Source of the DNA: Carpediemonas membranifera BICM
Taxonomy: Eukaryota; Protista; Fornicata
DNA: 64,000 nucleotides
Direction of reading: 5' to 3'
NCBI GenBank assembly: GCA_019828565.1
Contig: JAHDYR010000069.1
Coordinates: forward strand, 1-64,000
Below the pieces are notes generated by a model, which had not been told where the DNA came from, did not search any database, and worked only from the letters and a program-made list of their open reading frames with translations. Every line of letters begins with the position of its first letter. Position 1 is the stretch's first letter. Positions 15,125-54,636 of the stretch are shown piece after piece. The position numbers and the translations under genes are program-made.

Positions 15125-15661
15125 CGGAAGGGAGCAAACTTTTATGTAATCAACGACAAACGCTAGCTATCCTAGCCTCATGACATTCTTTTCATTAACC
15201 AACGGGGGGGGGGGCGCTTAATTTACACAATGTTAACGAGGAAGCTAGTGTAAGTTAAACGTGAAGTCCTCTCCGCTTACCGAGGGAGAAGGAGTATACC
15301 AGTCGTAACTGGTACCGTGCCGTCGGATCCGGCGGATCCGAACCTTGCGCCATTCTGTCCGCATAAACTGCGTGACTCGCCTGACCGGCGAAGCACCTTT
15401 TGCCCGGAGTGAGGCTGTCGCATCGCCCTCCGCTCCGGGCCCGTTACCCGAGGTAACCTTACTGACGATGTAGCGCCAGCTAGCTATCCTAGCCTCATGA
15501 CATTCTTTTCATTAACCAACGGGGATATCCCGCCGGCAACGTGCTAACAATGGTTGGCCCACAGGCACGCAGGTGGGCCCCCCGACCAACCCCTCGAGGG
15601 TTCGCGTCCAAGAATGTCGGTACCGTGCTAATCGTCACTGCCCCACGACTCCCGTCGTGAT

Positions 15662-18600
15662 TTAGAGTGGTGGTTGTAGTAGAATTGAGGCCAGGTGACC
15701 CTGGACCCCTGGATGGGTGCGTACCCCGTTACCCATGTACCTCAGCATGCTCTTCGTAGATGACCACGTGCCCATTGAAAGGAGGACCTCCGTGTTTGTG
15801 TTGGCCACTGCCAGCTCAGTAGCTGCCCCCTTGCGGAAGGAGTGCCATGAAACGCTCGGGCCGAAGGCGCTGTGGATCCATGTGCGGAGGGTGGACGCTG
15901 CAAGTGGACACGTGAGTGATATACCTCCCGATGGACCGATCATGCGCCAGATCGAGTCGGAATTGTGTCGCGTCGCAGTTGGGACCCAGGCCTTGAGGGC
16001 TCTTGCCGGGTTGAAGCGGTCCCATGACCTGTTAGGAACAAGCTTATGGATGCCCTTGGCCGTCTTGGTGCGGGGGAACCAGAGCATAGCGTTGCCCTGT
16101 TCATCGAAAGAGATGTCGCCTCTCGTCAGGCCGAAGATCTCGCCTCCCCGGCTGACTGAGATGAATGTAAGTGCAGCGAACAGCGCTACCTGGAACGCTT
16201 TCGGTGAGGAGCGTCGCCTGTCGACGACCTTGCGGACCTGGGCTCTGGTCACCGGTAGTGCGCCTCCTGTTAGGCCGTCGAGAGATGCTACGTTCTCCGC
16301 ACTCTTGATGATCTGCCTGGCTTCTGGCGGAGGTCGCCAGTTGGAGACGAGTGGAGCCGCTTGACAGATCCAGTAGCCCTTTCTGTGGATACTCTGCGGG
16401 CCAGTGGTCTCGCCCTCGGCGAGGAGGAATGCTCTGAGTTGTTCGGCGTCGGAGAGGGCTGCCTGTCGCGATAGGACGAACTTAGAGACCCAGCCAGCCG
16501 CTGAGCGGCGCGATGACTCGTTTCGGAAGTGAGATAGCCTGTCGTGGCGGAGGAGTTCGTCGAACGGGTCTTGACGATCATCGCAATCATTCTGATCTTT
16601 CCTTGCCTCTCGGTCCAGGATAGCTCCGTGTTGAGCATGTGCGAGGAGTGGACTCTGAGATACATCTTGTGTTGGGACAGCCGTTTCAGCGCTCTGACTT
16701 CGGGTGAGTTGAGATCGGGGAAGAGGAGTATTGCCGCTGACCTCCACGTCCGAGGGGACGTAGTCGGGGTCTGAGGCGTCCGAATCTTCTCCAGACGACG
16801 ATGTGCCGCTCCCAAGAGCGCTGTCGGCGGAGCCAGATAGATCCTGGCGCCGGTCCAGGAGCGCTGGAAGCCGTGATCGTCGAGGGACCAAGCTTTCCTG
16901 ACGAATCCTGGCAGTGCGAGCTTCTTGTCCGGAGATGCAGTGACGTCTATCTCCGCCGGACCCCACTTGGCCATTATCGTCTCGAGTACCTCGCGGGGTG
17001 AGTGCCAATCGAGCTTTGCGAATCTCGACAGCCGGTCCGCCTGGACATTGAGGTGCCCTGCGATATGGAAGCAGTGAATATCGACATTCTTCGTGTTCGC
17101 CGTGGTGAAGATATCCTGCAGGAGTCGAATGGCCGTGTCGGCGAGACATGGGGAGCCCTGGCGGTTGACCCATGCGATGGCCGCGGTGTTGTCCGAAAAG
17201 ATAGCTAGTTGGGTCCTGGTGCGCTGGGTTGGGGTGAGCTTGATAGCCTGGCCAATCGCGTAGAGCTCCTTGACTCCGATATGAGAGTCTCGGAACTCGG
17301 GAGGAAAGCGGCCTTGAGCCGAGCGGCCCTGGTCGCCGTTGAATAGGCAGGCGCCCCACGCGAAGGAGGACGCGTCGGATGCGACCGAGAGCTGGAGTTC
17401 GTCCTTGATCTCCCAGTCTGCCCTGGCCTGAGCGAATGGTCTGGATGGACGATCTCTGAGCAGCGCTAGCCAGCTGTTGAGCTGGCGACGCATCTGCTGC
17501 GAGATGTGAAGCGTCGGGGCGGGATGTAGGGCCTGGAGTGATCTGAGCTGGAGCCTGGCGAACTGTGTCGTACTTGCGAAGAACGAGAGGCGGCCTAGTA
17601 GGCGTTGCCACTCGGTTGCATCGATCCTGCCGGCCCTGAGGGCCTGCTCGATTGATGTTGCATAGCGATCGGCTCTGTCCTTGGAAATCTGCAGTGTCTC
17701 GGCGGCTGTGTTGATGGTGACTCCTAGGTACTCCAGGCGTTGTGTGGGAGTTAGGATGCACTTGTTGAGCCCTGGGATAGCTCCCAGCGACCTCATGAGC
17801 GCGACTATTTGGGGAGCGGCGTCTGCTAGGTGGCGACGTGACCGATGTGAGATGAGAAAGTCGTCGAGGTACACCGCTATTGTCACGTTGAAGCGGTTCG
17901 CGAGTATCTTTGCTAGCTGGATGGACGTAGACTGGAACACGAACGGGGCAGCGGTCCAGCCGAACCCTAGTGTGTTGTATCTGTACGCCTGCCCGTTCGG
18001 GAGGACGATCCCCAGTAGCGTGGAGTCGGTCGGAGCCACACCCATCTGGTGGTAGCCGGAGGCTAAGTCGATCTTGAGCATGAAGTCGTTGCGCTTGAGG
18101 TTGCGCACTGCTCGTTTTAGGCCGAAGAGCCGGAAGACCCGCGTCTCCGCAGTGATTGCGTTGAGGTCGCGTAGGTCGTGTACCGGGCGGACATCGTGCT
18201 CGCCCTTTGCAACCGCGAAGAGCGGGGCACTGTGCCGGAGTTGCCCGCTGGTACAGGGTGAGATCACGCCGAGTCGGACCATCTCGTCGAGCTTTGGGGT
18301 GAGCCGTGGGTCCAGGCGCCGTTGTGGCGTGGGTGGCGGGGGAGTGCCTGTTAGCTTGATAGGTACGCCGTGACGGAGCCAGCCGACCACCTCGTCCGAG
18401 GCGCCGAGCCTTTCCCATAACCACCACCTCGCGTTCATCGACGGGAATTGATGAACAGAGGTTGTTATGTTCTCTTCTTCTTGTGAAACCCCCCATGTTA
18501 CCGTTGGTGTCCTTACGCCTGCCCTTAGAGCGGGCCTTCGCTGCGCAGTAAGCGATGGTGCGGCTGCTCTTGCTTTCTGTGCTGTTGAAGAGGTCCTGAA

Positions 18601-19018
18601 ACAGCTCGGTCGTGGCATCGGACCAGTTATCATCTTTGAGGTCTAGGACCATTCTACGAGCCTGTAGTTCGAGAAGAAGACGTTGTTTCGTCGCGGAATC
18701 TGGGAGAGCACTAGTGATCACGACAACGCGTTGAAGCCACTTCGCTTCTGCCTTGAGAGGTCTCTTGCTTGGTAACTCCGAGAAGGTGTCCATCTCTGCC
18801 ATAGTTGCATCTATGTCCTCCATCGTGTCCTCCTCCAACGATTCGGAGGTATTGAACCTAGCAACGGTGGAACTTTCGAGCATTTCGTCGTCAGGTTCTT
18901 TCTCTGGCGGAGGCGGAGGAGCAAGCCTGTTTAGGGCTTCGGACATGGAATTGATTGAAGCTTCTAGCTTATCTAAGCGTGTTGCCGTCGGATCCGGCGG
19001 ATCCGAACCTTGCGCCAT
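15662..19018 (-). CDS. YR1 gag-like ORF continuous with tyrosine recombinase
   Basis: 1118-aa ORF whose C-terminus has YR catalytic motifs SRGGEI (R), RTKT (K), HSFRKG (HxxR), GTWSS and RY. Confidence 0.85.
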   Translation of the reverse strand: MAQGSDPPDPTATRLDKLEASINSMSEALNRLAPPPPPEKEPDDEMLESSTVARFNTSESLEEDTMEDIDATMAEMDTFSELPSKRPLKAEAKWLQRVVVITSALPDSATKQRLLLELQARRMVLDLKDDNWSDATTELFQDLFNSTESKSSRTIAYCAAKARSKGRRKDTNGNMGGFTRRREHNNLCSSIPVDEREVVVMGKARRLGRGGRLAPSRRTYQANRHSPATHATTAPGPTAHPKARRDGPTRRDLTLYQRATPAQCPALRGCKGRARCPPGTRPTRPQRNHCGDAGLPALRPKTSSAQPQAQRLHAQDRLSLRLPPDGCGSDRLHATGDRPPERAGVQIQHTRVRLDRCPVRVPVYVHPASKDTREPLQRDNSGVPRRLSHLTSVTSPPSRRRSPNSRAHEVAGSYPRAQQVHPNSHTTPGVPRSHHQHSRRDTADFQGQSRSLCNINRAGPQGRQDRCNRVATPTRPPLVLRKYDTVRQAPAQITPGPTSRPDASHLAADASPAQQLASAAQRSSIQTIRSGQGRLGDQGRTPALGRIRRVLLRVGRLPIQRRPGPLGSRPLSSRVPRLSYRSQGALRDWPGYQAHPNPAHQDPTSYLFGQHRGHRMGQPPGLPMSRRHGHSTPAGYLHHGEHEECRYSLLPYRRAPQCPGGPAVEIRKARLALTPRGTRDDNGQVGSGGDRRHCISGQEARTARIRQESLVPRRSRLPALLDRRQDLSGSADSALGSGTSSSGEDSDASDPDYVPSDVEVSGNTPLPRSQLTRSQSAETAVPTQDVSQSPLLAHAQHGAILDREARKDQNDCDDRQDPFDELLRHDRLSHFRNESSRRSAAGWVSKFVLSRQAALSDAEQLRAFLLAEGETTGPQSIHRKGYWICQAAPLVSNWRPPPEARQIIKSAENVASLDGLTGGALPVTRAQVRKVVDRRRSSPKAFQVALFAALTFISVSRGGEIFGLTRGDISFDEQGNAMLWFPRTKTAKGIHKLVPNRSWDRFNPARALKAWVPTATRHNSDSIWRMIGPSGGISLTCPLAASTLRTWIHSAFGPSVSWHSFRKGAATELAVANTNTEVLLSMGTWSSTKSMLRYMGNGVRTHPGVQGHLASILLQPPL
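16288..18633 (-). CDS. YR1 RT / RNase H / methyltransferase-like ORF (overlapping frame)
   Basis: RT motifs IDLASGYHQ, LGFGW..AP and YLDD. RNase H motifs SDAS, HIGVKEL, FSDN and ADRLSR. MT-like WGPAEIDVTAS...WTGARIYLAPP. Confidence 0.9.
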   Translation of the reverse strand: MITGPMPRPSCFRTSSTAQKARAAAPSLTAQRRPALRAGVRTPTVTWGVSQEEENITTSVHQFPSMNARWWLWERLGASDEVVGWLRHGVPIKLTGTPPPPTPQRRLDPRLTPKLDEMVRLGVISPCTSGQLRHSAPLFAVAKGEHDVRPVHDLRDLNAITAETRVFRLFGLKRAVRNLKRNDFMLKIDLASGYHQMGVAPTDSTLLGIVLPNGQAYRYNTLGFGWTAAPFVFQSTSIQLAKILANRFNVTIAVYLDDFLISHRSRRHLADAAPQIVALMRSLGAIPGLNKCILTPTQRLEYLGVTINTAAETLQISKDRADRYATSIEQALRAGRIDATEWQRLLGRLSFFASTTQFARLQLRSLQALHPAPTLHISQQMRRQLNSWLALLRDRPSRPFAQARADWEIKDELQLSVASDASSFAWGACLFNGDQGRSAQGRFPPEFRDSHIGVKELYAIGQAIKLTPTQRTRTQLAIFSDNTAAIAWVNRQGSPCLADTAIRLLQDIFTTANTKNVDIHCFHIAGHLNVQADRLSRFAKLDWHSPREVLETIMAKWGPAEIDVTASPDKKLALPGFVRKAWSLDDHGFQRSWTGARIYLAPPTALLGAAHRRLEKIRTPQTPTTSPRTWRSAAILLFPDLNSPEVRALKRLSQHKMYLRVHSSHMLNTELSWTERQGKIRMIAMIVKTRSTNSSATTGYLTSETSHRAAQRLAGSLSSSYRDRQPSPTPNNSEHSSSPRARPLARRVSTERATGSVKRLHSSPTGDLRQKPGRSSRVRRT

Positions 19019-22000
19019 TCTGTCCGCATAAACTGCGTGACTCGCCTGACCGGCGAAGCACCTTTTGCCCGGAGTGAGGCTGTCGCATCGCCCTCCGCTC
19101 CGGGCCCGTTACCCGAGGTAACCTTACTGACGATGTAGCGCCATGTCTAGCGAGCGGCGAGGCGCAGCCGAGCTTCGCGAGCCTGAGCGCAGCGAAGCAG
19201 TTTGAGGCTATGGGGTGCGTCGGGGTCCTCCGTCGCTCCATCCAGTGAGTCGCTGGCGAGTCAACAAAACCAACAAGAACACTCTGAAGCGCTCTGCACG
19301 AGCCGATTGCTACACCAATATCAGAATTGAGTAACAATTAGTGGGAGAGGCCCAAATCCTCTGCTGCAGCATGTGCTGCGTCGCATTGCTTGATGAACGC
19401 TGCATATGTGTGCACTTGCCCTCTCATGCACGCCAAGAAAGCGTTATCAGCCATCTCGCGGACCTGCTCAGCCTTAAGACCAAGTTCATCGCGCAAATCG
19501 TCCGTCCAGCCCCCTTCCGTGCACTCTTCCAACGTCACCGTTGTGAAGCGTCACCGCGGGTATGAGCTTGACGTCCCAGTTGGAGTACTGGGCGCGCTTG
19601 CTCGTCATGGCCTGAGACACGTGGTTGCTGACGACGTTGTCAATGACGATTGCCTTCACGCCAGGTTTCGTGAGGAGGATGTCCGCCCGCGCCTTCATAG
19701 GCTTGGTCCGGTCAATGGTCCACTCACTGGCCTTGTTCAACCACACCTCGGACTGGACTCTCCAGCCATAACCCTTCAGGTCTCTCACCAGCCCGTCCTT
19801 GATAGCGTTGTGACGCTCGTCGTCCAGGCCTCCACGGAGGCATGGGCAGCACAGGGTGTGAGTAGCGTTGCACACAACGGACTGGTGGTTCACGGTGCGT
19901 GCCCTGCAGAGAGGGCAGACGTCAAATCCGGGCGTGAATGCGGGGAGGCCCAGGTGATTGCGGAAGATGGGGGCAACAGCGGCATCGGTTACCGAGCGCC
20001 CAAGAGAGGTCGGGTCGACCATCATGAACGACCGAACGACGTTGGGCGAGACGGCGGCACTCACAGAGAGCTTGGTGGCAATAGATTCCTCAACGAGGCG
20101 AACCAAGTTCTTCTGCGTGTGGTCGGCGTCAAGAGCCTTCACATCGTCCAAGCCACTAGGCCAGTTCGACGGCGTGTTGAGCTGGGGCGGGAGACACTTG
20201 ATGGCACCCGTCACGCTGTCAGGTGAGCGTGTAACACCCAGCCCTGCCAGTTGTCTCGTGGCCGCGAGGAACGCGGGAGCCCACACGACTGATGGCATTG
20301 CCAGCGCAAGCCCGCGTCTTTCGACCGGCATACTCAGGCGGAGAGCAAAGTCGTCATCGACCTCAGCCTCGCTCGACAGGATTCGGAGGATGGCCGGGAC
20401 CGCCTCTTTCTTCTCAAATCCGAGCTCAGCCTCGTAGAGACCGTTGCCGACTCCACCCGTTGCGGGGGGAACGTTACGGAAGAAGTGCTCCCACTTTGTG
20501 AGCGCACAATACTTCGCAATGATCAACGCAGGGGCAGTTGCCTCCGGCCCCTCCTTGGCCACCATCTCTCCGGCAGCGTTAAGGAGTTGCATCACGCGAC
20601 AATTGACCTTGGCCAACTCACCCATCGCATGAGCAGCGGACCCAACCGGAACGCCCACGAGGTTTAGGCTGCGTCTTCTTGGGACGCCTCCCGAGGTGTT
20701 GCCGTCGGTAACGTCTCTGTGCGCCACAACGCACTTCGACTTGTTGAGCCGCAGGCCGACTTCGAGGAACTTCTCCCTCGCGATCTCGACAAGGTTGTTA
20801 GCCTCTCGGCCGACACCGGGCGTCTGCAAAGGCCGATCAGTCGTGGCGACAAGATCGTCTTGGTACGCTTGGAGGTGCCAACCCGGGAACGCCTCGCGCA
20901 GAACGTCCAGAATGGGCTTGATGCCCAGGCTGAACAGAATAGGGGACAGGGGATCTCCTTGATGTATGCCCTCAGCTGACCTTATCACTCCTCCTGACGT
21001 GGAGAATAGGAGCCCTTGGCGATACATCGTAGACAGGTAGGGCATGAGAGCAGGCATGTAAGCGCGTACCACGTCGAACATGAACGCCCTAGATAGGCAT
21101 CCATAAGCGTTCGATAAGTCGAGGGAGACAACAGTCCCTCCCTCCTCGTAGACCCTGGTCACGCTGTCACTCAGCCTCTCCAGGCCGCACTTCTCCCCCA
21201 CCCCATACTGATCCTTGAGGGTCCGGTCGACGTCGACCAGGCGGGCCCTCACAGCCCAGGCGAGAGCCTTCGCCGCAACCCGCCGAAGCGAGTCCCCGAT
21301 GGCCACTCCTCGGATCTTCCCGGCCCCCTTGGGGACCGGGACAATGATGCAGTGGCTCAATACCGCGGTGTAGGTCTCGCCGTTCAGGATGTCCTGTACG
21401 ATCGGCATCAATGCGGCGATGAGGTCATGTCTGGCCACCTTCGCTGCTATTCTGATATGGAGGAAGGACAAGCCCGACGGCCCTGGGGCCGCCTCGGCCT
21501 TTAGAGCGTGTAGTACAGTCTTGAGGGTCCTAGCGGACACCTCAACTGACTGCAGTGGCTCTGCGGGGACGTCCTTAAACGGAACATCTGGGCGCAGGCC
21601 ACTGTAATCCTCCTGCAGTCTCTTCAGCTCTACATCCACCTCCTGTGGTGACAGGCCCGCATCCTCAGCTACCAGCGCAGTGGCTGCCTTGGACACGAAC
21701 CCGTGGCGAACCAGTCGCATCACCTTACGCCACTTGGACGGGCGGCGCTTGGGGCCTTTCGATGCAACCGGCGGTGCGTACAGCGCCTTCGGGTACTCGA
21801 GTACCGTCCTCAGGGCCGCGCGCTTCTCGTCCTCGCTCTCCACGAGGGCCACCCGCTTGAGCTTCTCGATCAGGCCTCTGGCGAATTTCTCGCGTCCCCT
21901 CTTGGGGGGAGCGATCTTGCCAAGGAAGAGAGCCTGTCCCGGTGGTAGGAACACGTCGGGTCGATGGGCTGGGTGAGCGGGAGGGGGCAGTCGGGGGGCT

Positions 22001-22566
22001 TGCGGTGAAGCCCACCGCGGTGACGTGCGCTGCTGCGCTCGGCTGCGATGACAGCTGGCTACCAGGGGCGTGGACCTCTTCGACAGATGGAAGGAGACTG
22101 GCAGGGTCGTTGTTGCCCATCACGTTTCTCCTGATCTCTCGGAAGAATTCGGCCGCCACCGACGGAGCTGTTTTGGCAGAACGCAGCGGTGTTGCTTTGG
22201 GAGTACTGCTAAGAGTAACACCCGCCGCGTCTAAGAGCCGCTTGAAGGAATCTACGATGTCCTTCAGTGCTCTCACCGTCAAACGCACAATCTTCTTGTT
22301 GTTCACGTCCTTCATCAGCTCGACGATGGCCGCTTCGGAGCACAGCGTATCAAACACTGTCTCTACATTGCACCAACGTGCGTCAATGAACTCAGCATTG
22401 ACGAATTTCGCGTAGTCGGTACGAACAGTCTGCAGCAGAAGCTGTACGTCCCGAGCAAGCGCGTTTTCGCGCCAATCGGACGTTATGGAAACTCTCATCG
22501 CCATCTGGCCTCCAGGATCAGCCTGGGGCACAGAAAATGACGACATTTCCATTTCGGAAGGGAGCA

Positions 22567-25500
22567 TCGTTTATTGCCTTTTGGACGAACTGTATTGCGA
22601 GCGGCGAGGCGCAGCCGAGCTTCGCGAGCCTGAGCGCAGCGAAGACGTCACTCTAGTGGTCAGTATGTCGGGTTTGAGGCACTGCTCGCTCCGAAATCTC
22701 CCTTTCGACTCTCCACTCAGTCACAACGAACGCGAACGCGAATAACGCGCAGATCACGCTCAAAGTACAGAAACAACATCAGTATTAGTGGTTGAGGCCA
22801 TTAGCCTCAGCTTGACGGTGCGCAGCATCCGCCTGGCGCATGAACGCATGGAACACATGAACTTGCTGCCGCATACAGGCCATCATGACCGCGTCGGCAA
22901 TCTGCCCAACAGTTTCGGCATCAAGGCCCAAAACGTCGCGCATCTCATCGGTCCATCCTCTCCCATGCACAGCACCAACACCACCACTCTGGCGAACGAC
23001 CACGGGAATAACCCGGACGTTCCAGTTGGCGTACTGCTCCTTCTTGCTCCGCATAGATGCAGACGCGTGATTGCTCACCACTACGTCAAGCACAACGGGT
23101 TCGGTATGGCCCGGTCTGGTCAAGAGGAGGTCCGCCCGCGCCTTGACCCGTTTGGTCCGGTCCACAGTCCACTCGCTGCCCCGTCCGAGCCAATGCTCAA
23201 CTCTTACGCGCCAGGGGTGCCCGCGCAGCAGTTTGGCGAGCGTGTCGCGAATTTGGTCGTGCCGCTCCGATCCCAGCCCCTCCCTCAGGAAGGGACAGGT
23301 AAGAGAATGCTCGGCTGAGCAGGGGACAGACCGGTGGTTAACACTACGGGCCAGGCATAGCGGACAGACGTCGTGGCCTGTCTCAAAGGCAGGAAGGCCG
23401 ACATGGTTGCGAAGCATCGGTGCAGCACCCTCGTCACAGGGGTTACGACCCATAGCGGCTGGATCAGCCGCGAGTAGAGACCTGATCACGTTTGGCGAGT
23501 CGACTGAAACAGTCAGTTGGCTGGAAATGTTATCCTGCAGGAGGCGTACCAACTTCTTCTGCGTGCTCTCGAGTGAGAGCTTTCTGACATCGCCATATGA
23601 TGTCGGCCAATCCTTGGGCGTCGCGGCGAGAGCCGGGATGCATGGCAGTGCGTCTTGGATGAGAGCCTCGGGCCTTTCGACCTTCAGCTCTATGAGTTGT
23701 CGTGCGGCACCCAGATAGGCTGGGGCCCACACAACAGAGGGCATGGCCAATCCGAGCCCGCCTTGACTGACCGGCAGACAGAGCCTTGCGGCGAAGTCCT
23801 TGTCAGTCTCTGCGCTGGACTGGAGCAGCTTCAGGATGGCGGGGACCACCTTCTGCTGTTCGAAGTCCAGTTGCGACTCGAACATGTCACCCCCGCCCGG
23901 CGAAACATTGCGGAAGAAGTGCTCCCACTTGGTGAGGGCACACAGTTTCGTCACTAGGAGGGCAGGGGCGACGGCTTCCGCGCCAATGTCAGAGACCATC
24001 GATGCAGCAGCGTCAAGCAGCTCCATAACCTTGCGGTTAGCAGAGCCTAGCTCCCGCATGATGTGCGTGGCGGAGCCGATTGGAACACCAACCAGCTTGG
24101 TATCGCGTCTCCGTGGGACGCCACCAGTTGTGTTGCCGTCAACGACATCCTTATGGGCTAGCACGCACTTGGCACGGTTGAGGCGGAGGCCAACCTCGTT
24201 GAACTTCTGAGCGGCGAGTTCTGTGAGATTGTTGGCCTCACGGCCGACCCCAGGCGACTGTAGCGGGCGGGTAGTGGTGGCTACAATGTCATCCTGGTAG
24301 GCACGGATGCACCACCCAGGGAAAGCCTCGCGCAAGACGTCCAGAATGGGCTTAACGCCTAAGCTGAAAAGAATTGGCGAGAGCGGGTCCCCTTGGTGAA
24401 TGCCTTCAGCCGACCTCATGGTGATGCCGGAGGTAGAGAAAAGTAAGCCCCGTCGGTACATGGTCGACAGGTATGGGATGAGCGCCGGCATGTAGGCCGC
24501 CACCACCTTCATGGCGAAGGCCCTCGACAAGCATCCATAGGCGTTGGAAAGGTCGAGTGTGAGCACTGTACCGCCACTTCGGTAGACTGCACTCACCTCC
24601 TCTCCCAACCTCTCCAAGCCGCACTTCTCACCTACTCCGAACTGGTCCTTCAGGGGCACGATCGACGTCAACCAGCCGCTTACGGACGGACCAGGCGAGT
24701 GCCTTTGCCGCCACACGGCGAATAGAGTCGCCGATCGCGACCCCTCGGACCTTCCCTTCACCTTTCGGCACAGGGACGAGAATGCAATGACTGAACACAT
24801 CAGTGTAAGCTTCTCCGTTCAGGATGTCCTGAACCAGCGGGAGCAGAGCCTGGACTAGTTCGCGCCTTGATGTCTTGTAGGCGATCTTCAGGTGAAGGAA
24901 CGATAGCCCGGAGGGCCCCGGGGCCGCCTCAGACTTGAGTGTGTTGAGGATGGTCTTCAGAGTCTTAGAGGAAACTTCGACACACTGCAGGGGGTTCTCG
25001 GGGACGTCTCGCATGGGGACGTCGGGACAAAGCCCGTTGAACCCAACCTGGAGGTCCCGCAGTTGAGCGTCGATTTCAGTCGGTGTCAGGTCAGTCTCAT
25101 TGGCTACCATGGACGTGGCGGCCTTCGAGACAAACCCGTGGCGAATCAGGTTCAGCGTCCGACGCCACTTGCTCGCGCTAGCGCGTCGTCCGCCTCGGTC
25201 CGACGGCGGTGCGTACAGCGTCTTGGGGTAGTCTACAACCTTAAGAGCCTCAGCCCGCTTGGCGTCGTCACCTGTCGCGTTGTTCACCTCCCTCAATCGT
25301 TCAATAAGGCCTCGTGTGAACTTCTCGCGCCCGCGCTTGGGCGGAGCGATCTTTCCGAGGAACAAGGCCTGACCCGGGGAAGGAAGACATCGGGTCGATG
25401 AGCAGGGGTAGTGGGAGGTGCTGATGGCGGGGTTAGGGGGAAACCAACCGCCGAAACGTGAGCTGCCGTGTCTGCCTGGACCTCTTCGTCAACAGGCTGC

Positions 25501-26007
25501 GATGACAGACCCTCGTCGTCCGTCGCGATCTCTACTGCAGAGGGAGGGACATTTGCAGCGGTCTCTGGACGCATAGCGTTGTCTCGTATCGTGCAGGCGA
25601 TATCGCAATGGACTTGGGGGCTGTGTTTGCAGAACGCAACGAAGTTGCCGTTGGCAGCGCCTGTGTGGTGATGCTGTGGGCCTTAAGGAGGTCCTTGAAG
25701 CTGTCAGCAATCGCCTTCAGGGCTTTCACGGTAAAGCGTACGATGTGTTTGTTCTGGACGTCGCGCATGAGCTCGACAACCGCAGTTTCAGAGCACAATG
25801 TGTTGAACACCGTGTCCGTATCACACCACAGTCTGTCAATTAGGCTTATGTCGACGAACTTCGCGTAGGTGCTATGAACTTCGGTAAGAAGAGCACGAAC
25901 ATCCTCGGCGAAGACGCTTTCGCGCCATACGAGTCTCGTACGTCGTCGAGTCACCATCTGGCCTCCAGGATCAGCCTGGGGCGCAGAAAATGACGACATT
26001 TCCATTT
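22567..26007 (-). mobile_element. CRE family B, full-length copy (ORF 22785..26005, several homopolymer frameshifts)
   Basis: Diverged paralogue of family A with the same RT/RLE motifs (AYQDD, CPLC, RHDQIRD, RADLLL). Bounded by cggaagggagca (22555) and cgggagggagca (26008-26019). Confidence 0.9.
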
Positions 26008-26019
26008 CGGGAGGGAGCA

Positions 26020-29455: not shown

Positions 29456-29498
29456 CGGGAGGGAGCAAGCTTTTACTGCCAAGAAGCGACTGTGTGGC

Positions 29499-33633: not shown

Positions 33634-33658
33634 CCTATTGAAGGCGTGCCCCGCCACC

Positions 33659-33729
33659 TGCTCTGTAGTGTAGTGGTAGCATAAGAGGCTCATAACCTCT
33701 AGGCCTAGGATCGAAACCTAGCGGAGCAA
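33659..33729 (+). tRNA. tRNA-Met(CAT), initiator-like
   Basis: Acceptor TGCTCTG/CGGAGCA, anticodon arm AGAGG-CT CAT AA-CCTCT, T arm CTAGG-ATCGAAA-CCTAG (A54/A60 as in eukaryotic initiator tRNA), followed by cTTTT. Confidence 0.88.
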
Positions 33730-42794: not shown

Positions 42795-43449
42795 TCAGGT
42801 TGTTACTGCCTTAACCTGCACTCCTTATTCTGCACTACCTGCACACTTTCATCTTGTTGTTGGGGTTTAGCATCTGCATAGTTGCCTTCCCAATGGGTGA
42901 GCGCCTATGTCGTCGTTGTTTAGCACGTTGGGTGGGCCGCTTCCCGCCCTGTGGGTTGTTGGTGGGCGGCCCGGGTAGGCGTCTTCTTTGCCCTTGATAT
43001 TTCTCCAGGACCCAGAAGCATGCGCCATTCACATGGGGTGCTTGGCCAGAACGGCTGCTTCCTCCAGAGTCCCCAGACGTGGCCCAGGTTCCCTCTTGGA
43101 GCTGACCTAGGGTGTACCACCCCTTTCACTGGCCGCGCCCTCGCGGTGCTTGTCGGGACTTTCGTGCCAGTCTCTATAGCGCTTCTGGCCTCGCACATTG
43201 GCAGCATCGTTACCTAACTACGCATAGGTGGGAGCGACTCCTTTCGGCGCCCCCTCCCAAGGCTGGAGTTCCAGCCTGCCGGACAGGCGGGTCCTCGAAG
43301 GCGTTCCAACTGCCTCTTACCCGCCCCCCGGTCCCTGCGGGGAACAGGGGTTTTAAGAAAAGAAAAGTCACCCGGGCATTGGCGCCAGTACAGCCCTTCT
43401 GGCGGGCTCCAACGCTGCGCCTATTCCGGCGCCTTCACTTCACCTAGTC

Positions 43450-46400: not shown

Positions 46401-47864
46401 GTGGGGTGGGTTGTCGGTTTGCTCGTTGCCCTTGGGCGGGCCGTCCCCTGTGGATTCGGTGGCGAGCAGCTTGGTACCCTGGTCCGCCATCCAGATGTTT
46501 GCGATCCTGCTAACGAGGGTGGAAGCGTCGCAGAGGTCCGGGTGGATGAACTCAGGGGCCGGCATTGGCCGGGTAGTAGTATCCCATGCGGCCCACAGCT
46601 CTTTGAAGCCCGGAACCGTCCAGCGAAGCACTAAGTCTTCGGCCTCACTGCGCGCTAGCTCGTCGCCGGCAATGTTGAGGGCTGAATCCGTGGGTGTCCT
46701 GCTAACCAACACAGGTCTGGTCACCCCATCGGTCCTGCTGTAGACAGCTATCGCGGAGAACATGCCACCTTCCCAGGGCTTGACGGCCTGTCCGTCAAGG
46801 GGGGGGAAGCCTCCTGCTGGGGGTCTGGGGCTAAGGGGGACGGGGGCATCCTCCCAGGCCCGACCTAGGGCCACCCACTTGTTGTTGACGTTGTTGTGGG
46901 CTCTGTCCGCACCTGGCGCTTTCGCTGAGCCGGCTGTGGCTTGGCCGCCTGCCTTGAGGAGCCAGGCGGCGCTCTGCTGGCCGAACCTTGTCCTGATCCC
47001 AGGCCCTGTGAGGCTTTGGTGACCTGCGGCCTTGAATGTGCTGGCAACTAGCTCGAACAGCAAGGATCTAGCCGGTGGCGGGCTTGATACCTTGAAGTTG
47101 GCGGCGTTATCCCTCGAGAAGATCACTGTGGTGTTGTTGCACTTGGCGAGGATGGAATCGGCTGCTCTTCGGACTTTTTGCCACTCTTCGGTCGTAGCTA
47201 AGCGTTTTCCAAGCTTGGTGAGCTCTGTTCCAGCTTCGTCTACATCATTCCCCCGGCCCATGGCTTGTTGGGGGAACTTTGTGTTTGTGGCCGAAATTGG
47301 TCTCGAAAAGTCGGAGGGGGAAAGTCGGCATGAATCCCCCGGAGGGGGAGCCCTCCCTGCCCGCCTCGCCTGTAGGCGCCGTTGCCGGCGCTCGTAGGCT
47401 GGGAAACCCGGGGTCAGGGAGTAATCGGCCTTGGAGGTGAACATCACGAAGGCCGGCCCGCATCGGGGCAGTGGCCGGCGCTGTTGGTCCTCGCGGTGGA
47501 TTTTCCAGGCCGCCTGGCTTACCCACCATGGCCTTCCGGTTATCAGGGCGTAGTGGTATAGCAGGATGTCATTTTCTAGCATTTGGGTAGCCGTTATTTC
47601 CCTTTCTCGGCTGGGATTCTGCCACCACTGTAGCTGGTGATCCACTCCTGGGGGGAAGGGATCCTTTATCTTGCTATACCCTTTTAGGTCGCCGTACATC
47701 CGGATCAAGTCGGCGATTTTCTCGGTTCTCGTGCGCTCCTTGCGTAGAGGAGGCCCTATGGGATGCTCGGGGAGGAGATCTTCTGCTCGGGCAACGTACC
47801 CGCCCTGTGGGTTCCTGGGAAACGCGTCCATTGCCGGCCGGTGGCTCGGATGAGGAGTGTGCAT
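43450..47864 (-). CDS. LINE ORF1 (~1450 aa, several frameshifts) containing a Maelstrom-like DEDDh nuclease domain, Pro-rich linkers and a coiled coil
   Basis: Chain of overlapping minus-strand ORFs: 46188-47864, 45650-46369, 45175-45687, 44751-45086, 44348-44860, 43450-44436. MAEL-type motifs at ~45280-45985. Confidence 0.7.
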
Positions 47865-47992
47865 TTTAGTGCTCCATCACCTGATCACACCATAGCCTTG
47901 TGGCGTTGCACGTTGGCCTTTCCGAGCAGGGGCGGGGAGGTGTGGCCTATTGCCTGAGATGCGGGGTCGGTTGCGAACCTTGTAGCCATAAT

Positions 47993-48773
47993 ATGGGTTC
48001 ACCACATTTGGTTCCTGTTACACCCATTAGCCCGCCTGGCGACTACCACCAAGGCCCAGGCATTGCCGCAGCTAAGGTTCAGCCTTCTAAGGTACCTGAT
48101 TCCCCTCTTGGCCCCTCATGCCGATCACCTCCAAGGCCCAGGCATTGCCGCGGCGGAGCCCCAGACCCCTAGAGAGGGCTGGGGGTCGGATTCTTCCACC
48201 ACATCGTCCTCTGTGGAGGAGCTGCCCCCCGGGTCATTGGCATTGCCTTCCTCCCGCAGCGCCCGCGCCTCTGCTCCCAACCTGGTGGGATGGGGCCTCA
48301 GGAGTCCTCAACGCCGACTCTTCCGCTCCTTCCAGGGGAAAGCCGTCCCCCGCCGCCTCCAGCTGGCCCGGTCCCCTGCTTCCCCCGGTCCTCACAACGG
48401 CGAGGGCGCTGCCCCGTTTGTCACGCCATTGGCTTCCTCCCCAGCTGGGGCTCGCACCGTTCGTCAGCCTGTGGCTCCACTTGCGTCAGCCCTCGACGCT
48501 CTCAGCACTTTGGATCGCATCGCCATGGACTGGCACTCGTGTGCCTATGCCTTCGTGGACATGCTCCATGAGGGGACCGACGAGGATCAGCCTGTCGAGA
48601 ACCTACAGGCCATTTTGGCATTCCAGCGCACTTCTCAGTCCCAGATGGTTATGTATCGCAGCAGCAGGGGCGCTCTTGAGCGGGCCCTTAGGCAGTATGT
48701 CCCTTCGGTTTCCCATTTCCTTGCCGACGGAAGCCCCTCAGTGGAGTTCCTGGGCGCCGGGACTCCTCAGTAA
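47993..48773 (+). CDS. Antisense ORF inside the LINE 5' region (~260 aa, one frameshift)
   Basis: MGSPHLVP.. joins ORF 48063-48773. The peptide repeat QGPGIAAA (21-bp direct repeat at 48049-48069 and 48131-48151) becomes in-frame after one indel. Helical-looking C-terminus. Confidence 0.45.
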
Positions 48774-50199
48774 ACACCCAGGGTTGAATGGGGGTTGAGA
48801 CCATGTTGCTGCTGTTCCTTGCGGTATCTGCCTACCACTCGGGTTGCTGGGCCCCGGCATTCTCCCCTTCTCCCAGCGGGGGAGCGCGGCCACAGGGCGC
48901 CATTTGGGTTTCCCTCCAGTTGCGCGTCATTCCTACTAAATTCATGAGTTCATACCTTGGTTTCGGCTTGGTTGCAGTGGTGAGGGCCCTTGGCATGTTG
49001 CTGGGGGCTCCTCTGGACGTTCTTTGCCCTGTGGGTTGAGGAACGTCCGGGCGGTAAGCTTCCCTTGGTCTTTTGGATGGTAATATCCCATCAGACCGCT
49101 CACCGGGGGCTCCATGCCCATACGGGTTTCGTTGCCCCAGAGGGTGCACTTTAGGGAGCACAGAGAACCAACCCAAGCACAGCGCCCGTCCGCTAGCGGG
49201 TTATACAAGGCAGGCAGGGTGGTTTCAGGGCGACGGCTCGTGCCTCCGGCGCTCGCATCTTCCAGTTTTCTGCCACCGGCCCGTTTCGCTTCCGTTTGAC
49301 TTGGTCTCAGGCGATCTCATCGAGGAGGCTAGAGAGAGGCCTCGTGCGCCCTATGGGTAGAAGTGGTAAAGAGTTATGCTGTTCCTGCTGGTATTCCCCG
49401 AGCAGGAGAACTCCCGATGCTGAATTGACCAAAATGTGGCATTCCACGCTATAGGTCACCGCCGCTCTGTTTTGAGCTCTATAAACCTCGAAAGAATCGC
49501 CAATGGCTATCATTCCTCGGCGCTTGGCTTTGTTCCGGTTGGTGATTCCAACTTTCCATACCGGACATTTTAACTGTGGCCGACGCTGCTGGAGCCCTGC
49601 TCCTGAAAATTCCGACGCTTACGCTTGCCCTTAGTCTTGGCCTTAGCGAGGATCGTCTCGATCTCCATCTCAGACTTCGGGGGCGTGGCTCGCAGGGCTG
49701 CAGTGGCGTAGTCACAGACGTTGTCGTCGTAGTCGTCCTTGAGGAGAAGGACCTTGAACCGGCTCAGGAGACGGAGCAGTAGATCGTTCACGTCGATTGA
49801 GTGCGGGTCCGCGGTCGTCAGGAGACGCATGATCTCGCGTAGGAACTTGGCTTCGTCGCGGGGCCCGTACCTCTTGGGGAGCTCCAAATCGAACAAGAAG
49901 GACGGAAAGCCTTGGAAGGTTCCCTGGGTTGCTTGCTCATCGGTTTCTAGCTCGTACTCTTCTTGTTCTACCTCCCTCTGGATGGATCTTTCCTCGATGT
50001 TCTCCATCTTCGTTTTCATGAACTCCAATGTGGCAGTTACGTTGTTGGTAAACTTTCGGAACTCTTCCTGGGATACAGGAGGTTCTGCGGACGTGCCCGA
50101 TGTGCCTTCGGGCATTCGAAATTCTGATGCCATAAACTGCACGTTTCCGTGCGCCCTCTCGGGCGTCTCAGCACCCCGGGTGCCAATGGGCTCGAGTGG

Positions 50200-50635
50200 T
50201 ACTCTTACATCGCGCTAACAGGTTACCTCGGGTAACGGGCCGTGAGCGGAGGGCAATGAGATCGCCTCGCTCCGGCATGGTTATGCGCCGACCAGGCGAG
50301 CCGCGCAGTTTATGCGGGCAGAATTGGGGCTACATCAGCTCTAATGTCACCTTGGGTGACGCCATCCGCAAGAGACGATCAATCGTTGCGCGGGTGCACT
50401 TTAAGCAGGCAGAATGGTAGAAACTTCGGCTCCGCCGACCGTCTCCCGTCTGCCCGCATCGGCCAAGGCCGATGTTCGGCTCATCCGGTAAGATGAGCAC
50501 GTTCGACTTACATAGGTTGCCGGAGCGCAGGTAGGTCCCGAATATTTACTTAGGAGACCGGGGGTTTCTAAAGTAAATCTTCTCCCCCCCGTTGGATATC
50601 AAGCGTAGTATGTGAGAAAGGCTTGCCAGTCAAGC
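50200..50635 (+). mobile_element. ORF-less YR mini-unit 1 (A-spacer-B), diverged relative of YR1
   Basis: A-like ggttacctcgggtaacgggcc...gcagtttatgcgggcagaat and B-like ccccgttgg...GCTTGccagtCAAGC. Start approximate. Confidence 0.7.
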
Positions 50636-50636
50636 G

Positions 50637-50950
50637 TGGCGCTACATCGTCAGTAAGGTTACCTCGGGTAACGGGCCCGGAGCGGAGGGCGATGTGATAG
50701 CCTCACTCCGGGCAAAAGGTGTTTCGCCGGTCAGGCGAGTCACGCAGTTTATGCGGACAGAATGGCGCAAGGTTCGGATCCGCCGGATCCGACGGCACGG
50801 TACCAGTTACGACTGGTATACTCCTTCTCCCTCGGTAAGCGGAGAGGACTTCACGTTTAACTTACACTAGCTTCCTCGTTAACATTGTGTAAATTAAGCG
50901 CCCCCCCCGTTGGTTAATGAAAAGAATGTCATGAGGCTAGGATAGCTAGC
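50637..50950 (+). mobile_element. ORF-less YR mini-unit 2 = A2-spacer-B2 of the YR1 family
   Basis: Reverse complement of 15162-15478 with a few substitutions and a shorter C-run. Confidence 0.9.
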
Positions 50951-50959
50951 GTAGAAAAT

Positions 50960-53900
50960 TCGAGCACCACTCGAGCCCATTGGCACCCGGGGTGCTGAGA
51001 CGCCCGAGAGGGCGCACGGAAACGTGCAGTTTATGGCATCAGAATTTCGAATGCCCGAAGGCACATCGGGCCTAAAGGAGCCCGAGAAGAATAAATCCTT
51101 TACCCCCCCTTTGGGAGTATGAGTTCCTGTCACAGGACCATCACTGGCACCTGCGCGCGCCGATCAATGTGCACTTTAGGTCACACTTCGAAACGCATCG
51201 GCAGGATGTCTGATAACGAAGACCTGCCGCCGCAAGACAGTCCCGATGAGCTTAACAAGCGTATCGAGAAGCTGGAGCGCTTGGTTAAGATACAATCGGA
51301 AGCAATTTTGGAGCAGCAAGCAGAAGCAGCTCGCCGTCCACTGTTCCTGGAGATGCCAAAGAGGTTCGGCCTCGAAGATGAGGCCAGATTCGTATACAAG
51401 ACCATGAATAGGATCGAGAACGGCGCAAAGATGAAGGAGATCGGGAACATTCTCTTTGCAAGAATCCAGTACCTTCTAATCAAGGACGTGTACACTGACG
51501 CTACTGCAGAGCGGTTCGAGAACTATTGCAAGGCGAAGGGCGTGCCTGATCGCGACGAGGTCCTGGAACTGGCGGCCCGCGCCAAGTCTAAGGGCGATAA
51601 GCGCGACGCTAATTTTCGCCGCGGTGGCCGCGCTCAGGACCGAGGTCGCACTCAGACAGGATCCTCCGGCAAGAGAGCCCACACCTAACCCTCTTTCCAT
51701 GCATGAACGCGGCGTGGAGGGAGTGGCAGAGGTTGGGAGCATCACAACGGGTGATCAACTGGTTACGATACGGGGTCGAGATCCGTCTGAGAAGTCAACC
51801 ACCAGCACCAAGGCAACAGCCGACAGTCGACCCATTCATTGTCCAGCAGATTCCTTCCTTGATAGAGACAGGCGTCATAGAGCAAGTGAATCCCTCTTCC
51901 CTGCGACACACCGCCTCGCTGTTTACTGTGCCGAAGGGCGAGTCGAAGAGGATCATTCACAACCTCACGATACTGAACGACTGCTCGGCAGAGCGCTCAT
52001 CCTTCCGGCTCTACGGTCTGCGCAGAGCTCTCTCCCTTCTCCAGAGGGGCGACTGGATGGTCAAGTTCGACCTCAAGTCCGGGTACCATCAAGTACCAGT
52101 ACGGAAGGAGGACCGCAAGCTGCTAGGAGTCTATCTTCCAGACGGACGAGCGTTTCAGTACAGAGTGCTAGGCTTCGGCTGGCGCGCATCGCCGTTCGTG
52201 TTTCAGACGATCACCAACCAACTCGCCAAGATACTAGCCCTTCGGACGGGTCTTACCATCGTTGTCTACCTCGACGACTTCCTCTTATTTCACCGCGACC
52301 GAGAAATCCTGAGGAGGGCGGTGCCGCGCATCAGGCGGACTCTAGCCGACCTCTGTGTCCTCACCTCAGAGGAGAAGTCAGAATGGGCACCGACTCAGTC
52401 ATTGGTCTATCTGGGGCTCGTGATAGACTCCGCGAGTTTTACAATACGCCTCCCGGCGGACAAGGCCAAACGTTACTCCTCTCACATTCATCAGGCTCTG
52501 GCAGGCAAGACCATCGATCAGGAGACTTGGGCCAAGATCCTCGGGAGACTGACTTACTTCGCTACAACCGCCCACGGGGCTTTCCTCCGGCTGAGACACC
52601 TTCAACAGGACCCACTCTCCAAGGAGCTACTGCAAGAGTGGCTGCTACTGCTAAGAGAGCGCCCAGTCCGAGACATCAGAGAACTTCAGTCGCTTTGGGG
52701 CGCTCACCCCTCCTTAGACCTCGTCGTATCGACAGACGCATCTGGAGTCAAGTGGGGAGCAGCCGTGCACGGCGAGTATGGGACCTCAGCCTCGGGCACG
52801 TTCACTCCAGAACTAAGAGCAGAATCTATCAACGTGAAGGAGCTCGCGGGAATCCTACAGGGCATCCGTCTGATCGGCAGACAGAGTTCCCAACGCGAGC
52901 TATCGATCTTCTCAGACAACACATCAGCTCTGGCCTGGCTCAACAAGGCGGGGTCTACGAAGGCTCCACCTCAGGCCCTGCACATTCTAGCCCAGATCCA
53001 GAAGGAGGCGGAGGACCGGAACCTGACACTCCGTGGACTACACACTCCGGGCATCATCAACCTGGCAGCAGATCGGCTGTCCAGAGGCTTCTCACGACTC
53101 CCTTCCTCTCTGGAGTCCAGCATGGAATCTGTCCTCGCGGAGTGGGGTCCAGTCCAGACAGTCTCAGCGGACGTAGACGTAAGGCTTGGATGTCGCGTCC
53201 TCTGGGCCCCCAATTCGTCTATGGCAGCCATAGTCCAGAAGATAGCGACAGCGAGAGTTCAGACTCAGACTGGACACCCGAGGTCTTGGACCTCAGCAGT
53301 CTTTTCTCCTCTACCCAGAGGTTCAAGCGCCGGAGATGAGACTCCTCAAGAGTTGGACGTCCTGGAAACTCCGTCTCTCCGTCCCGGCTTCGAGCTCAGA
53401 TCTGGCCCACCTACTTCACCTACAGGACAGAGGACGCCTACGGTTCAATGTGATGGCGTTCAGGACGTTTTCCACAGAGTCCTCAGGTCGGACAGAGTGA
53501 TTCACCTTAATCACGCGTCTGCTCGGACGGTGGCCGGCTGGGTGGCCAGGTTCGAAGGCTCTCGCGATCGCAGCCTGTCGGATCGAGACCAGCTTGTAGC
53601 CTTCCTCAAGGACGAAGGCTCCTTCTGCGGGCCATCGAACGTGGCGAGGAAGGGCTACTGGATTGTTCAGCTACAGGAGTTCCTCAAAGACTGGCATCCG
53701 CCCGCCAACTCCAAGTACATCGTTAAGCAGGCGGCTAAGGGCGCCAGCACGGCGGGAACTACCGGCGGCTCGCGCGCCATCACCAAGGCTGAGATGATCG
53801 AGGCACTGGGGCGCCGGAGTGACGACTTTGAGTCATATCAGGCATGTCTCTTTGGGGCAGTCGCCTATCTGACGGTGTCCAGAGGCATCGAGATACTCTC

Positions 53901-54609
53901 CCTATGCCCGGCCGACCTGGAGCTACTCAAGAACGGCGACATTCTCCTACACATTCAGCGGACCAAGACCATCCTAACGGGAGTTAAGAAGCGCGTACCA
54001 TACGTATGGCTATCAGCCGCCTTCAACCCGGCCTTGGCACTTAGACGCTGGGTCGAGGGCACACACTACCTGGCTGATGACACCCCCATCTGGCGAGTCA
54101 TAGTCAACGGGCGCCTGAGCAGAGACAAACCGCTCACAGCCGCACACCTCCGACGAGTCGTGAAGGCGTTGTTCGGTCCACGGACGGGTCTCCACAGCTT
54201 CCGTAAGGGGGCAGCGTCGGAGATGGCTCTATCAGGAGTCCCGCTGGAGGTGATCCTCTCAATGGGCACATGGAAGGACGTCACCTCCCTCCGCAGCTAT
54301 GTCGCTGACGCCATCAGAACAAACGAGGACCTCACCAGGAGGATGAACCTCAGCCTTCTCGGGCCCCACTTTTAACCACCCCCTCCATTAAACATCCGCG
54401 TTCGAGGGGAACGGCCGAGGCGAGACGGACTCGCCGGCCTGGATTCATCATTAATTCTTAACTCTGGTCGAGGCGAGATAGACTCGCCGGCCCAAAGCTT
54501 TAGTCCCACAGGGACGTCTTGCGGGATTGTCCCATTTTGGTTGGATTTAAGAGGAGGGCTCTCTGTTATAGAGCCACACTTTGTGGATAGGTGGCTAGCC
54601 TAGTCTAGC
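50960..54609 (+). mobile_element. ORF-less YR mini-unit 3 (YR3 family; 50960-51125 plus 54590-54609), split by YR4
   Basis: 50966-51070 is the inverted copy of the YR3 5' end (50096-50200). The YR3 B sequence cccctttgggagtatgagtt|gggtggctagcctagtctagc is split at 51125/54590. Confidence 0.8.
51126..54589 (+). mobile_element. YR retroelement YR4: ORF1 51206..51688, then RT/RH/MT-remnant and YR within 51703..54375
   Basis: Motifs FDLKSGYHQ, YLDD, STDASG, INVKEL, ADRLSR; SRGIEI, RTKT, HSFRKG, GTW. Confidence 0.9.
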
Positions 54610-54636
54610 ACAGCTAGCTGAAAAGAAGAAAAGATA

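Follow-up and report, generated by a model that had tools for sequence, protein, structure and literature searches.

Tyrosine-recombinase retrotransposons of Carpediemonas membranifera lie tail-to-tail with tRNA genes in a short downstream zone

The first 64 kb of contig 68 of the Carpediemonas membranifera assembly (24.2 Mb in 69 contigs; this whole stretch is referred to below as the window) contain three tRNA genes and, besides these, almost nothing but transposon sequence. Among the transposons are retroelements that code for a tyrosine recombinase (YR), here designated Y with a family number, whose 3' termini are found a short distance downstream of tRNA genes, both within the window and throughout the genome. 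Their insertion site is any tRNA gene, approximately 9–51 nucleotides (nt; median approximately 30) past its 3' end and just beyond the T-run terminator, and the junctions of each copy with the chromosome fall exactly at the A-start and at the B-end, with no target-site duplication.

Four Y termini in the window adjoin either a complete tRNA gene or the detached 3' end of one. tRNA genes were called by ARAGORN and Rfam, and both methods support the three listed here, which are given together with the flanks of the two displaced insertions (LTR, long terminal repeat).

11383-11455, + strand: tRNA-Thr(CGT); its 3' side is taken up by an array of CRE-like non-LTR elements that displaced YR elements
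33659-33730, + strand: tRNA-Met(CAT), with a 31-nt trailer at 33731-33761
54637-54708, - strand: tRNA-Ala(CGC), with a trailer at 54610-54636 that contains two TTTT runs
15125-15161, + strand: left flank of Y1, made up of a copy of the 3'-terminal 12 nt of tRNA-Thr (15125-15136) and a 25-nt trailer; identical to 11444-11480
29456-29498, + strand: left flank of a Y2 fragment, made up of the 12-nt 3' end of a Thr-type tRNA (29456-29467) and a 31-nt trailer with a TTTT run

The element ends are located at position 15162, 25 nt past the copied tRNA-Thr 3' end; at 29499, 31 nt past the Thr-type 3' end; at 33762, 31–32 nt past tRNA-Met; and at 54609, 27 nt past tRNA-Ala. All four elements are encoded on the strand opposite to the tRNA, so that element and tRNA are arranged tail-to-tail, and each element opens, when read from outside, with the short palindrome GCTAG-N5/6-CTAGC. 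An initial annotation of this DNA had placed these termini 25, 31, 32 and 27 nt past tRNA 3' ends, all pointing towards the tRNA, and both statements are confirmed by our reading of the sequence. It had also assigned the four termini to different families with different flanks; the flanks do differ, but the termini at 33762 and 54609 both belong to Y3, and hence only three families are represented. The structure fits the further proposal that the two Thr-associated insertions took place while the tRNA 3' end was still attached to its gene, since Y1 is found exactly between the 25-nt trailer and a non-LTR element.

The association extends to the whole genome. On its own, the palindrome of the Y2/Y3 type occurs 51 times in the 24.2 Mb, compared with 3 occurrences of a reversed control, and that of the Y1/Y5 type 85 times, compared with none. 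We then ran composite pattern searches over the entire genome, in which a T-loop/B-box motif is followed at a set gap by the terminal palindrome (GCTAG-N5/6-CTAGC), with a control pattern alongside; distances were measured from tRNA position 73 and carry an uncertainty of 1–2 nt. With the palindrome 12–42 nt past the tRNA end there were 38 matches against 1 for the control, 30 of them representing tRNA genes and 8 an unrelated repeat, and a gap of 43–73 nt gave 12 matches against 0, adding seven further tRNA genes. No match was obtained in these searches for a palindrome less than 12 nt past the tRNA end, for an element terminus facing the tRNA 5' end, or for an element 5' end facing the tRNA 3' end. 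Orientation is tail-to-tail at all of the tRNA genes (37/37), and the same applies wherever a palindrome and a tRNA occur at one locus among the 20 loci examined together with their flanks (drawn from the 51 Y2/Y3 palindromes). When the 63 best-scoring tRNA genes were cross-matched by hand, 18 had a terminus within 60 nt downstream, where approximately 0.02 would be expected from some 136 palindromes in 24.2 Mb. Chance is excluded as the cause of this linkage, and the enrichment anticipated in the initial annotation is thus borne out against a random expectation. The interval of 25–32 nt that was suggested on the basis of the window is too narrow, however. Distances run from 16 to 51 nt, with a median of approximately 30 nt and one case at approximately 65 nt, and a Y7 copy only 9 nt behind tRNA-Val (locus L018) provides the smallest value, giving an overall zone of 9–51 nt. 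No Y insertion disrupts the tRNA or its T-run.

The targets have no sequence in common other than the early T-run. Elements of six families have been inserted behind no fewer than 24 distinct tRNA 3' ends, and the tRNA types that are hit include Thr, Met, Ala, Ser, Lys, Asn, His and Val. Apart from the T-run the trailers are unrelated to each other, there is no common junction motif, and the last bases before the junction differ. For example, a single trailer that is common to three paralogous tRNA genes has been entered at 29 nt (by Y3), at 32 nt (by Y5) and at 43 nt (by Y3), and families with unrelated termini (the GCTAG type, the CCACA type of Y7, and Y4) use one and the same zone. Since many tRNAs are used, the junctions differ and one trailer is hit at three positions, the site is set by position and not by sequence. 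The descriptive core of the initial annotation (integration downstream of tRNA genes at a set position and in a set orientation, by several families, with stacking) is strongly supported in the window and across the genome. Later elements are often found within the first 4–50 nt of a resident element end, at varying positions. Because the positional zone is already occupied in such cases, the newcomer falls inside the resident, and repeated hits on the same zone result in stacks of elements.

Comparisons of filled and empty sites demonstrate that insertion is exact. The site occupied by Y1 is uninterrupted at 11480/11481 and at 26044/26045 of the window and shows no target duplication when filled; this empty site and the B|A junction of Y1 have no bases in common around the crossover. 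Likewise, Y2 in locus L009 can be compared with an uninterrupted paralog on contig 47, and Y7 within a Y3 mini-element with intact Y3 minis in loci L016 and L018, and both insertions are exact and lack a duplication. The trailer that is hit at three positions serves as a fourth filled/empty comparison. Crossing over takes place outside the palindrome, and there is no overlap sequence common to target and junction. Some other origins of the arrangement were considered and rejected. An attachment site of the prokaryotic type within the tRNA does not agree with insertion outside the gene, at variable distance, behind many tRNAs and with no common core; target-primed reverse transcription of Y does not agree with the exact 5' ends and the lack of target duplications; and the possibility that the tRNA is carried as part of the element, through transduction or as a primer copy, is contradicted by the many tRNAs involved, the opposite strand and the differing trailers.

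From their predicted domains and repeat architecture the Y elements are classified as PAT-like retrotransposons of the DIRS order. The Y elements and mini-elements (A-B units) of the window, with their open reading frames (ORFs) and reverse transcriptase (RT) regions, are as follows.

15162-19143, - strand: Y1, a complete PAT-like YR retrotransposon (B2 15162-15207, A2 15208-15478, B1 15479-15524, A1 18983-19143)
16288-18633, - strand: RT/RNase H/Dam-like ORF of Y1, from domain matches
15662-19018, - strand: long ORF of Y1 (1118 codons), which overlaps the RT ORF in a different frame and ends C-terminally in the tyrosine recombinase
29499-29967, - strand: 3'-terminal fragment of Y2 (469 nt), 100% identical to eight other copies
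33762-36744, - strand: 3' part of a full-length Y3, with an RT ORF at 35111-36682
49578-50204, - strand: 5' part of the same Y3, with the start of A1 at 50204, abutting mini-2
50205-50636, + strand: mini-2, an A-B unit of a Y1-like variant, 3' end towards tRNA-Ala
50637-50950, + strand: Y1 mini (A of 272 nt and B of 46 nt, no ORFs), 3' end towards tRNA-Ala
50962-51126, + strand: Y3 mini, comprising A and most of B, split by Y7 from its remaining 22 nt at 54588-54609
51127-54587, + strand: Y7, a full element that ends 49 nt from tRNA-Ala with its own terminal palindrome, CCACA-AAG-TGTGG
51703-54375, + strand: fused RT-RNase H-YR ORF of Y7, in a single frame
54588-54609, + strand: remainder of the Y3 mini (22 nt, terminal palindrome), at a distance of 27 nt from tRNA-Ala

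Matches to RVT_1 were obtained for ORFs of Y1, Y2, Y3, Y7 and of a related element, Z (described below), with E values from 1e-19 to 1e-28, and RNase H families match several members. The Phage_integrase family matches Z (E 8.6e-12) and Y7 (E 1.5e-6, above the cut-off) as well as Y1 (E 4e-4, below the cut-off), and Y7 can be aligned with Z at the R, HxxR and C-terminal Y positions of the recombinase. Neither an rve nor an endonuclease domain was detected in these Y and Z ORFs. In an alignment of ten RT ORFs, taken from the C. membranifera genome and the closest relatives, six match the Dam-like methyltransferase family PF05869 (best E 3.3e-7). The match in Y1 itself is weak (E 0.044), and the region is conserved across the ten-ORF alignment. 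Y1 has split direct repeats in the order A1-ORFs-B1-A2-B2 with no inverted-repeat arrangement, and pairs of B2 and B1 approximately 300 nt apart occur genome-wide. Some copies consist only of A-ORFs-B, such as that in locus L014 and Y7 in the window; these 'half' forms and ORF-less A-B minis are common. Copies are 99–100% identical to one another, which indicates that the families are young, and on this near-identity the elements are probably active.

In Y1, Y3 and Z, an ORF of 950–1160 codons that ends in the recombinase overlaps, in another frame, the entire RT ORF of 610–780 codons. The pairs are located at 15662-19018 and 16288-18633 of the window, at 1928-4783 and 2112-3950 of locus L015, and, for Z, at 5521-8997 and 5855-7861 of L015. 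Dual coding over approximately 2 kb has been kept across lineages with only about 32% RT identity; Y7 instead has RT and recombinase fused.

The terminal palindromes differ in sequence between families but retain the stem, and the loop varies in sequence and length. Most are of the GCTAG/CTAGC type. Mini-2 has GCTTG/CAAGC (50621-50636), in which both arms have changed in a compensatory manner, and Y7 has CCACA/TGTGG with a 3-nt loop (54573-54587 of the window; 1334-1348 of L018). A Y3-type element that is nested in a Y2 mini (L009, 4960-4994; L010, 4964-4998) ends in a (TAAGG)n-like run and does not have the usual palindrome; this nested structure is present twice on contig 5, 7.3 kb apart.

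The region between tRNA-Met and tRNA-Ala illustrates how the elements accumulate. These two convergent genes would be only some 70 nt apart with the elements removed, and the 3' end of every intervening element points to whichever of the two tRNAs is on that side. Behind tRNA-Met, a full-length Y3 element is split by a 12.8-kb block of other transposons (36745-49577), which is flanked by a 16-nt duplication of Y3 sequence. Behind tRNA-Ala, the Y3 mini amounts to 187 nt in total and is split 22 nt from its end by the complete Y7, and an 11-nt spacer separates it from the Y1 mini. The stacking of Y7 (named YR4 in the initial annotation) and of minis 1 and 2 in one orientation had been recognised correctly, although the distance of Y7 from the tRNA is by our count 49 nt and not 47 nt. 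The Y2 fragment stops at 29967/29968, where it abuts unrelated RT/RNase H sequence. This neighbouring sequence (29968-33658, - strand) represents the remains of an unrelated retroelement that is abruptly joined to the fragment; it includes the C-terminal part of an RT together with an RVT_3-type RNase H (29804-30937) and, at 31363-33081, an ORF of 572 codons with a weak zinc knuckle. No second copy of these remains was found in the 20 examined loci.

A second group of RT/tyrosine-recombinase elements, Z, is associated with the opposite side of tRNA genes. Z is absent from the window. Its representative in L015 (5080-9392; contig 6, 504979 onward) shows 32% RT identity and 35% recombinase identity to Y7 and starts approximately 5 nt upstream of the 5' end of tRNA-Ser. 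Across the genome, the Z 5' terminus (GCR-TACCGTCGTAGAC) is located 1–4 nt upstream of the mature 5' end of 19 tRNA genes in head-to-head orientation, with 19 matches compared with 0 for the control. The terminus occurs 55 times, and most of the other occurrences are head-to-tail tandem followers, approximately 4.3 kb apart, that lead away from the tRNA. No terminal repeats were detected within a single Z unit. Like a known upstream tRNA-targeting retrotransposon, Z occupies a very precise upstream position in a fixed orientation; in contrast to that system, it carries a tyrosine recombinase and forms head-to-tail arrays away from the tRNA.

A third group, the CRE-like non-LTR family, is found antisense inside tRNA genes. 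These elements enter 12 nt before the 3' end, leaving the old 12-nt end and the trailer at the far side, as seen at 11444-29475 of the window, at approximately 3880-3921 of L004, at approximately 4995-5035 of L009 and at 1107684-1107806 of contig 6. Entry has occurred in two tRNA-Thr genes and, as judged by 12-nt tRNA-end fragments, in at least two other tRNA species. The two Thr genes have one 25-nt trailer that is followed by the 3' end of a non-LTR element, and this trailer may belong to the non-LTR element. Y, Z and the non-LTR array are all antisense to the tRNA gene.

Several observations weigh against tRNA genes as the general landmark of Y, or against a dependence on the transcription apparatus of RNA polymerase III (Pol III) as such. 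A minority of outer termini have no adjoining tRNA or other Rfam RNA, namely in L001, where the terminus has a protein gene on either side, in L003 and in the duplicated pair L005/L006, and to describe the elements as always beside a tRNA, as was done initially, is therefore too strong. For the seven loci with tRNA-less termini, an Rfam scan with E values up to 1 revealed no tRNA or other Pol III RNA, and ARAGORN at a relaxed threshold made only one implausible call on the opposite strand. Of approximately 62 clusters of Y1/Y5 ends, only about 24 have a tRNA within 73 nt; many others may be inner repeats, tandem followers or displaced members of stacks. The target zone, at approximately 40 nt, is looser than that of Ty3 or Z. 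The dinucleotide GC directly precedes the terminus in 8 of 36 junctions (hand count) and is over-represented, hinting at a small local sequence or microhomology effect. The other Pol III genes are uninformative for targeting of this gene class in general: 5S rRNA genes were seen only in a 9.5-kb ribosomal DNA (rDNA) repeat, and no YR terminus is found up to 1.5 kb from the one U6 candidate, a match below the Rfam cut-off. Relatives of the elements with 38–50% identity (from GCA_002919055.1, Logan and metagenome contigs; L021-L026 and L032-L055) are not accompanied by a tRNA on their contigs, nearly all of which are 1.3–6 kb long and end near the element. In three further cases (15162 and 29499 of the window, L004, and L009/L010) the terminus is next to no more than the final 12 nt of a tRNA, the gene having been entered at that point by a non-LTR element, which displaced the former 3' end together with the YR element beside it.

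We favour a tether to the Pol III apparatus as the explanation for these positions, with a probability of roughly 0.6: a protein of the element would contact the asymmetric Pol III complex, downstream of the gene in the case of Y and upstream in the case of Z. The initial annotation had suggested a recombinase tethered to TFIIIC or to terminating Pol III, and we infer a tether by analogy with Ty3, Ty1 and TRE5-A. The exact junctions are as expected if the recombinase inserts a form with its B end linked to the A start; the non-catalytic part of this enzyme or the ORF1 product would contact the Pol III transcription complex on the tRNA gene, and this contact would set both the zone and the orientation. 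The partner of Y may be a factor bound to the B-box, or Pol III itself at the terminator, and that of Z may be on the TFIIIB or start-site side; the positions of Y and Z on one type of gene fit contacts with two parts of one complex. Later arrivals would enter the same zone, often inside the first few to approximately 50 nt of a resident end. Position and orientation could also be dictated by DNA structure and strand polarity with no protein tether, if single-stranded complementary DNA (cDNA), its terminal palindrome folded into a hairpin site, were inserted by the recombinase into single-stranded DNA, such as the displaced non-template strand bordering a Pol III bubble or R-loop or a fork stalled at the tRNA gene, and the product then resolved by replication. 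The antisense placement of Y, Z and the non-LTR array would amount to one strand rule, and Y and Z are found at the two ends of the transcribed unit. Every family, moreover, terminates in a short palindrome whose arms are conserved and whose loop varies, among which are one compensatory change and one unrelated palindrome, the crossover is outside the palindrome with no overlap sequence between target and junction, and a passage of PMC7192593 reports that DIRS-1 amplifies via linear single-stranded cDNA. However, most Y sites are 10–36 nt beyond the T-run, where Pol III should have terminated; nothing indicates that these recombinases act on single strands; and a symmetric site for binding of a dimer would keep the palindromes equally well. 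Such capture is in our view unlikely, but is the main alternative to the tether. More tentative still is a specific version in which Y and Z integrate, in the manner of integron cassettes, as folded single-stranded cDNA into the non-template strand where it is exposed at either edge of the Pol III transcription unit, Z at its start and Y just past the terminator, the product being resolved by replication; this would account for the strand rule, the hairpin-like palindromes, the missing overlap sequence and exact insertion with no duplication.

Compared with a Pol III tether, the remaining explanations account for less of the pattern. Entry through homology with resident elements (palindromes or A/B repeats), with the clustering at tRNA genes reflecting a few ancient founders, would agree with the many nested insertions in the first 4–50 nt of resident ends, with the occurrence of tandem A-ORFs-B arrays, and with the insertion of DIRS-1 into other DIRS-1 copies (PMC5006619). 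At least 20 junctions nevertheless join the element end straight to a unique trailer with no remnant of a resident, and the nested positions are variable and involve unrelated families, as a positional zone predicts; we regard this as an improbable account of the tRNA linkage, and element recombination is at most a contributing process for stacks and arrays. A hidden sequence specificity, for example for the terminator T-run and neighbouring bases as a short attachment-like motif, could be read into the T-run that all trailers contain 2–12 nt past the tRNA end and into the excess of GC before the terminus. This explanation is largely refuted, and very improbable, given that the distances to the insertion from both the tRNA (9–51 nt) and the T-run (approximately 10–36 nt) vary widely, that the final bases and the positions within one trailer vary as described above, that insertions occur at many positions inside resident ends, and that no bases around the crossover are common to the empty site of Y1 and its B|A junction. 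It is equally hard to credit that insertion is random and that, in a gene-dense genome, survival is limited to copies at harmless locations such as tRNA 3' flanks. A compact genome of 24.2 Mb in which neither tRNA nor T-run is ever disrupted would be in keeping with such selection, but selection cannot yield a 40-nt zone, a single orientation at 37/37 tRNA genes or near-identical young copies at many tRNAs, and other intergenic DNA should be equally harmless.

Retrotransposons that target Pol III genes were reviewed in 2018, when only LTR and non-LTR elements were named (PMC5911963). According to this review, downstream insertion is known only in dictyostelids, every reviewed tRNA-targeting case uses a DDE integrase or an apurinic endonuclease (APE), and those of known mechanism all use Pol III factors. 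In Dictyostelium, the Ty3/gypsy element Skipper-2 inserts 8–23 bp downstream of tRNA genes and the non-LTR element TRE3 40–150 bp downstream (PMC5911963, PMC5006619). Like these, Y is position-specific, occurs some tens of bp downstream of many different tRNA genes in a protist whose genome is compact and has no target sequence, and in both Dictyostelium and C. membranifera several element lineages converge on tRNA genes. In contrast to the DDE integrase of Skipper-2 or the APE and target-primed reverse transcription of TRE3, with their target duplications, Y uses a tyrosine recombinase and inserts exactly with no duplication; in addition, TRE3 has the same transcriptional orientation as the tRNA, whereas Y is always convergent with it.

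Within their own order, the Y elements resemble PAT, kangaroo and DIRS-1 in combining RT, RNase H and a Dam-like methyltransferase with a tyrosine recombinase, in the split direct repeats (A1...B1-A2-B2) and in the lack of a target duplication. A passage of the dictyostelid survey also describes for DIRS-1 a long recombinase ORF that overlaps the RT ORF (PMC5006619), as in Y. The known PAT and DIRS1-like members are described as inserting into their own copies or centromeric clusters (DIRS-1) or as lacking a defined host target, and none is named as tRNA-targeted; Y differs further in its common 'half' forms and ORF-less minis. DIRS-1 is treated as centromere-targeted in the dictyostelid survey (PMC5006619), and tRNA is unmentioned in a survey of fungal DIRS and Ngaro elements. 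The initial annotation knew of no report of tRNA targeting by DIRS, PAT or Ngaro elements; this agrees with the 2018 review (PMC5911963), and in the open-access literature our text searches found no published report of DIRS or tyrosine-recombinase elements that target tRNA, nor any on Carpediemonas transposons.

A further parallel is provided by the bacterial and archaeal world. It is well established that the integrases of prokaryotic and archaeal phages and integrative elements use tRNA genes as attachment sites. These enzymes belong to the same superfamily as the Y recombinase and likewise take tRNA genes as landmarks. They are, however, sequence-specific and recombine inside the 3' part of one particular tRNA at an identical core, whereas Y uses any tRNA at a site outside the gene, at variable distance and with no common core.

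Homing to tRNA genes has evolved repeatedly in retrotransposons of compact genomes, and Y shows it in a third enzymatic class, in a metamonad, with two sister lineages (Y and Z) specialised on opposite sides of the tRNA gene. The target is precisely definable, and dozens of independent junctions, filled/empty pairs, probably active copies and a cultivable host make the mechanism and the host partner testable; integration through folded single-stranded cDNA, if it were to hold, would be a pathway new to eukaryotic retroelements. tRNA genes in this organism are hubs for at least three retroelement groups (Y, Z and, inserted into the tRNA gene, a non-LTR family), which bears on genome annotation and on how the function of tRNA genes is judged.

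Some further features were noted in the course of this work. On contig 1, a host gene matches an OTU protease of C. membranifera, a free-living metamonad, with 100% identity. A search of public sequencing runs gave one run with 8% of the query words and no RNA run. The 5S rRNA genes recur every 9.5 kb at 8851-47168 of contig 23 (L027-L030) and are presumably part of the rDNA repeat unit. Positions 1-10000 of the window have 66% G+C and a strong excess of T over A (AT skew approximately -0.4), with several frames open for 1500–2000 codons, and probably represent a long low-complexity repeat or gene. Finally, direct repeats of 127 nt that are 4451 nt apart (57422-57548 and 61873-61999) flank a 1044-codon ORF (58106-61240), and on this arrangement 57422-61999 looks like an LTR-type element just upstream of tRNA-Ala.

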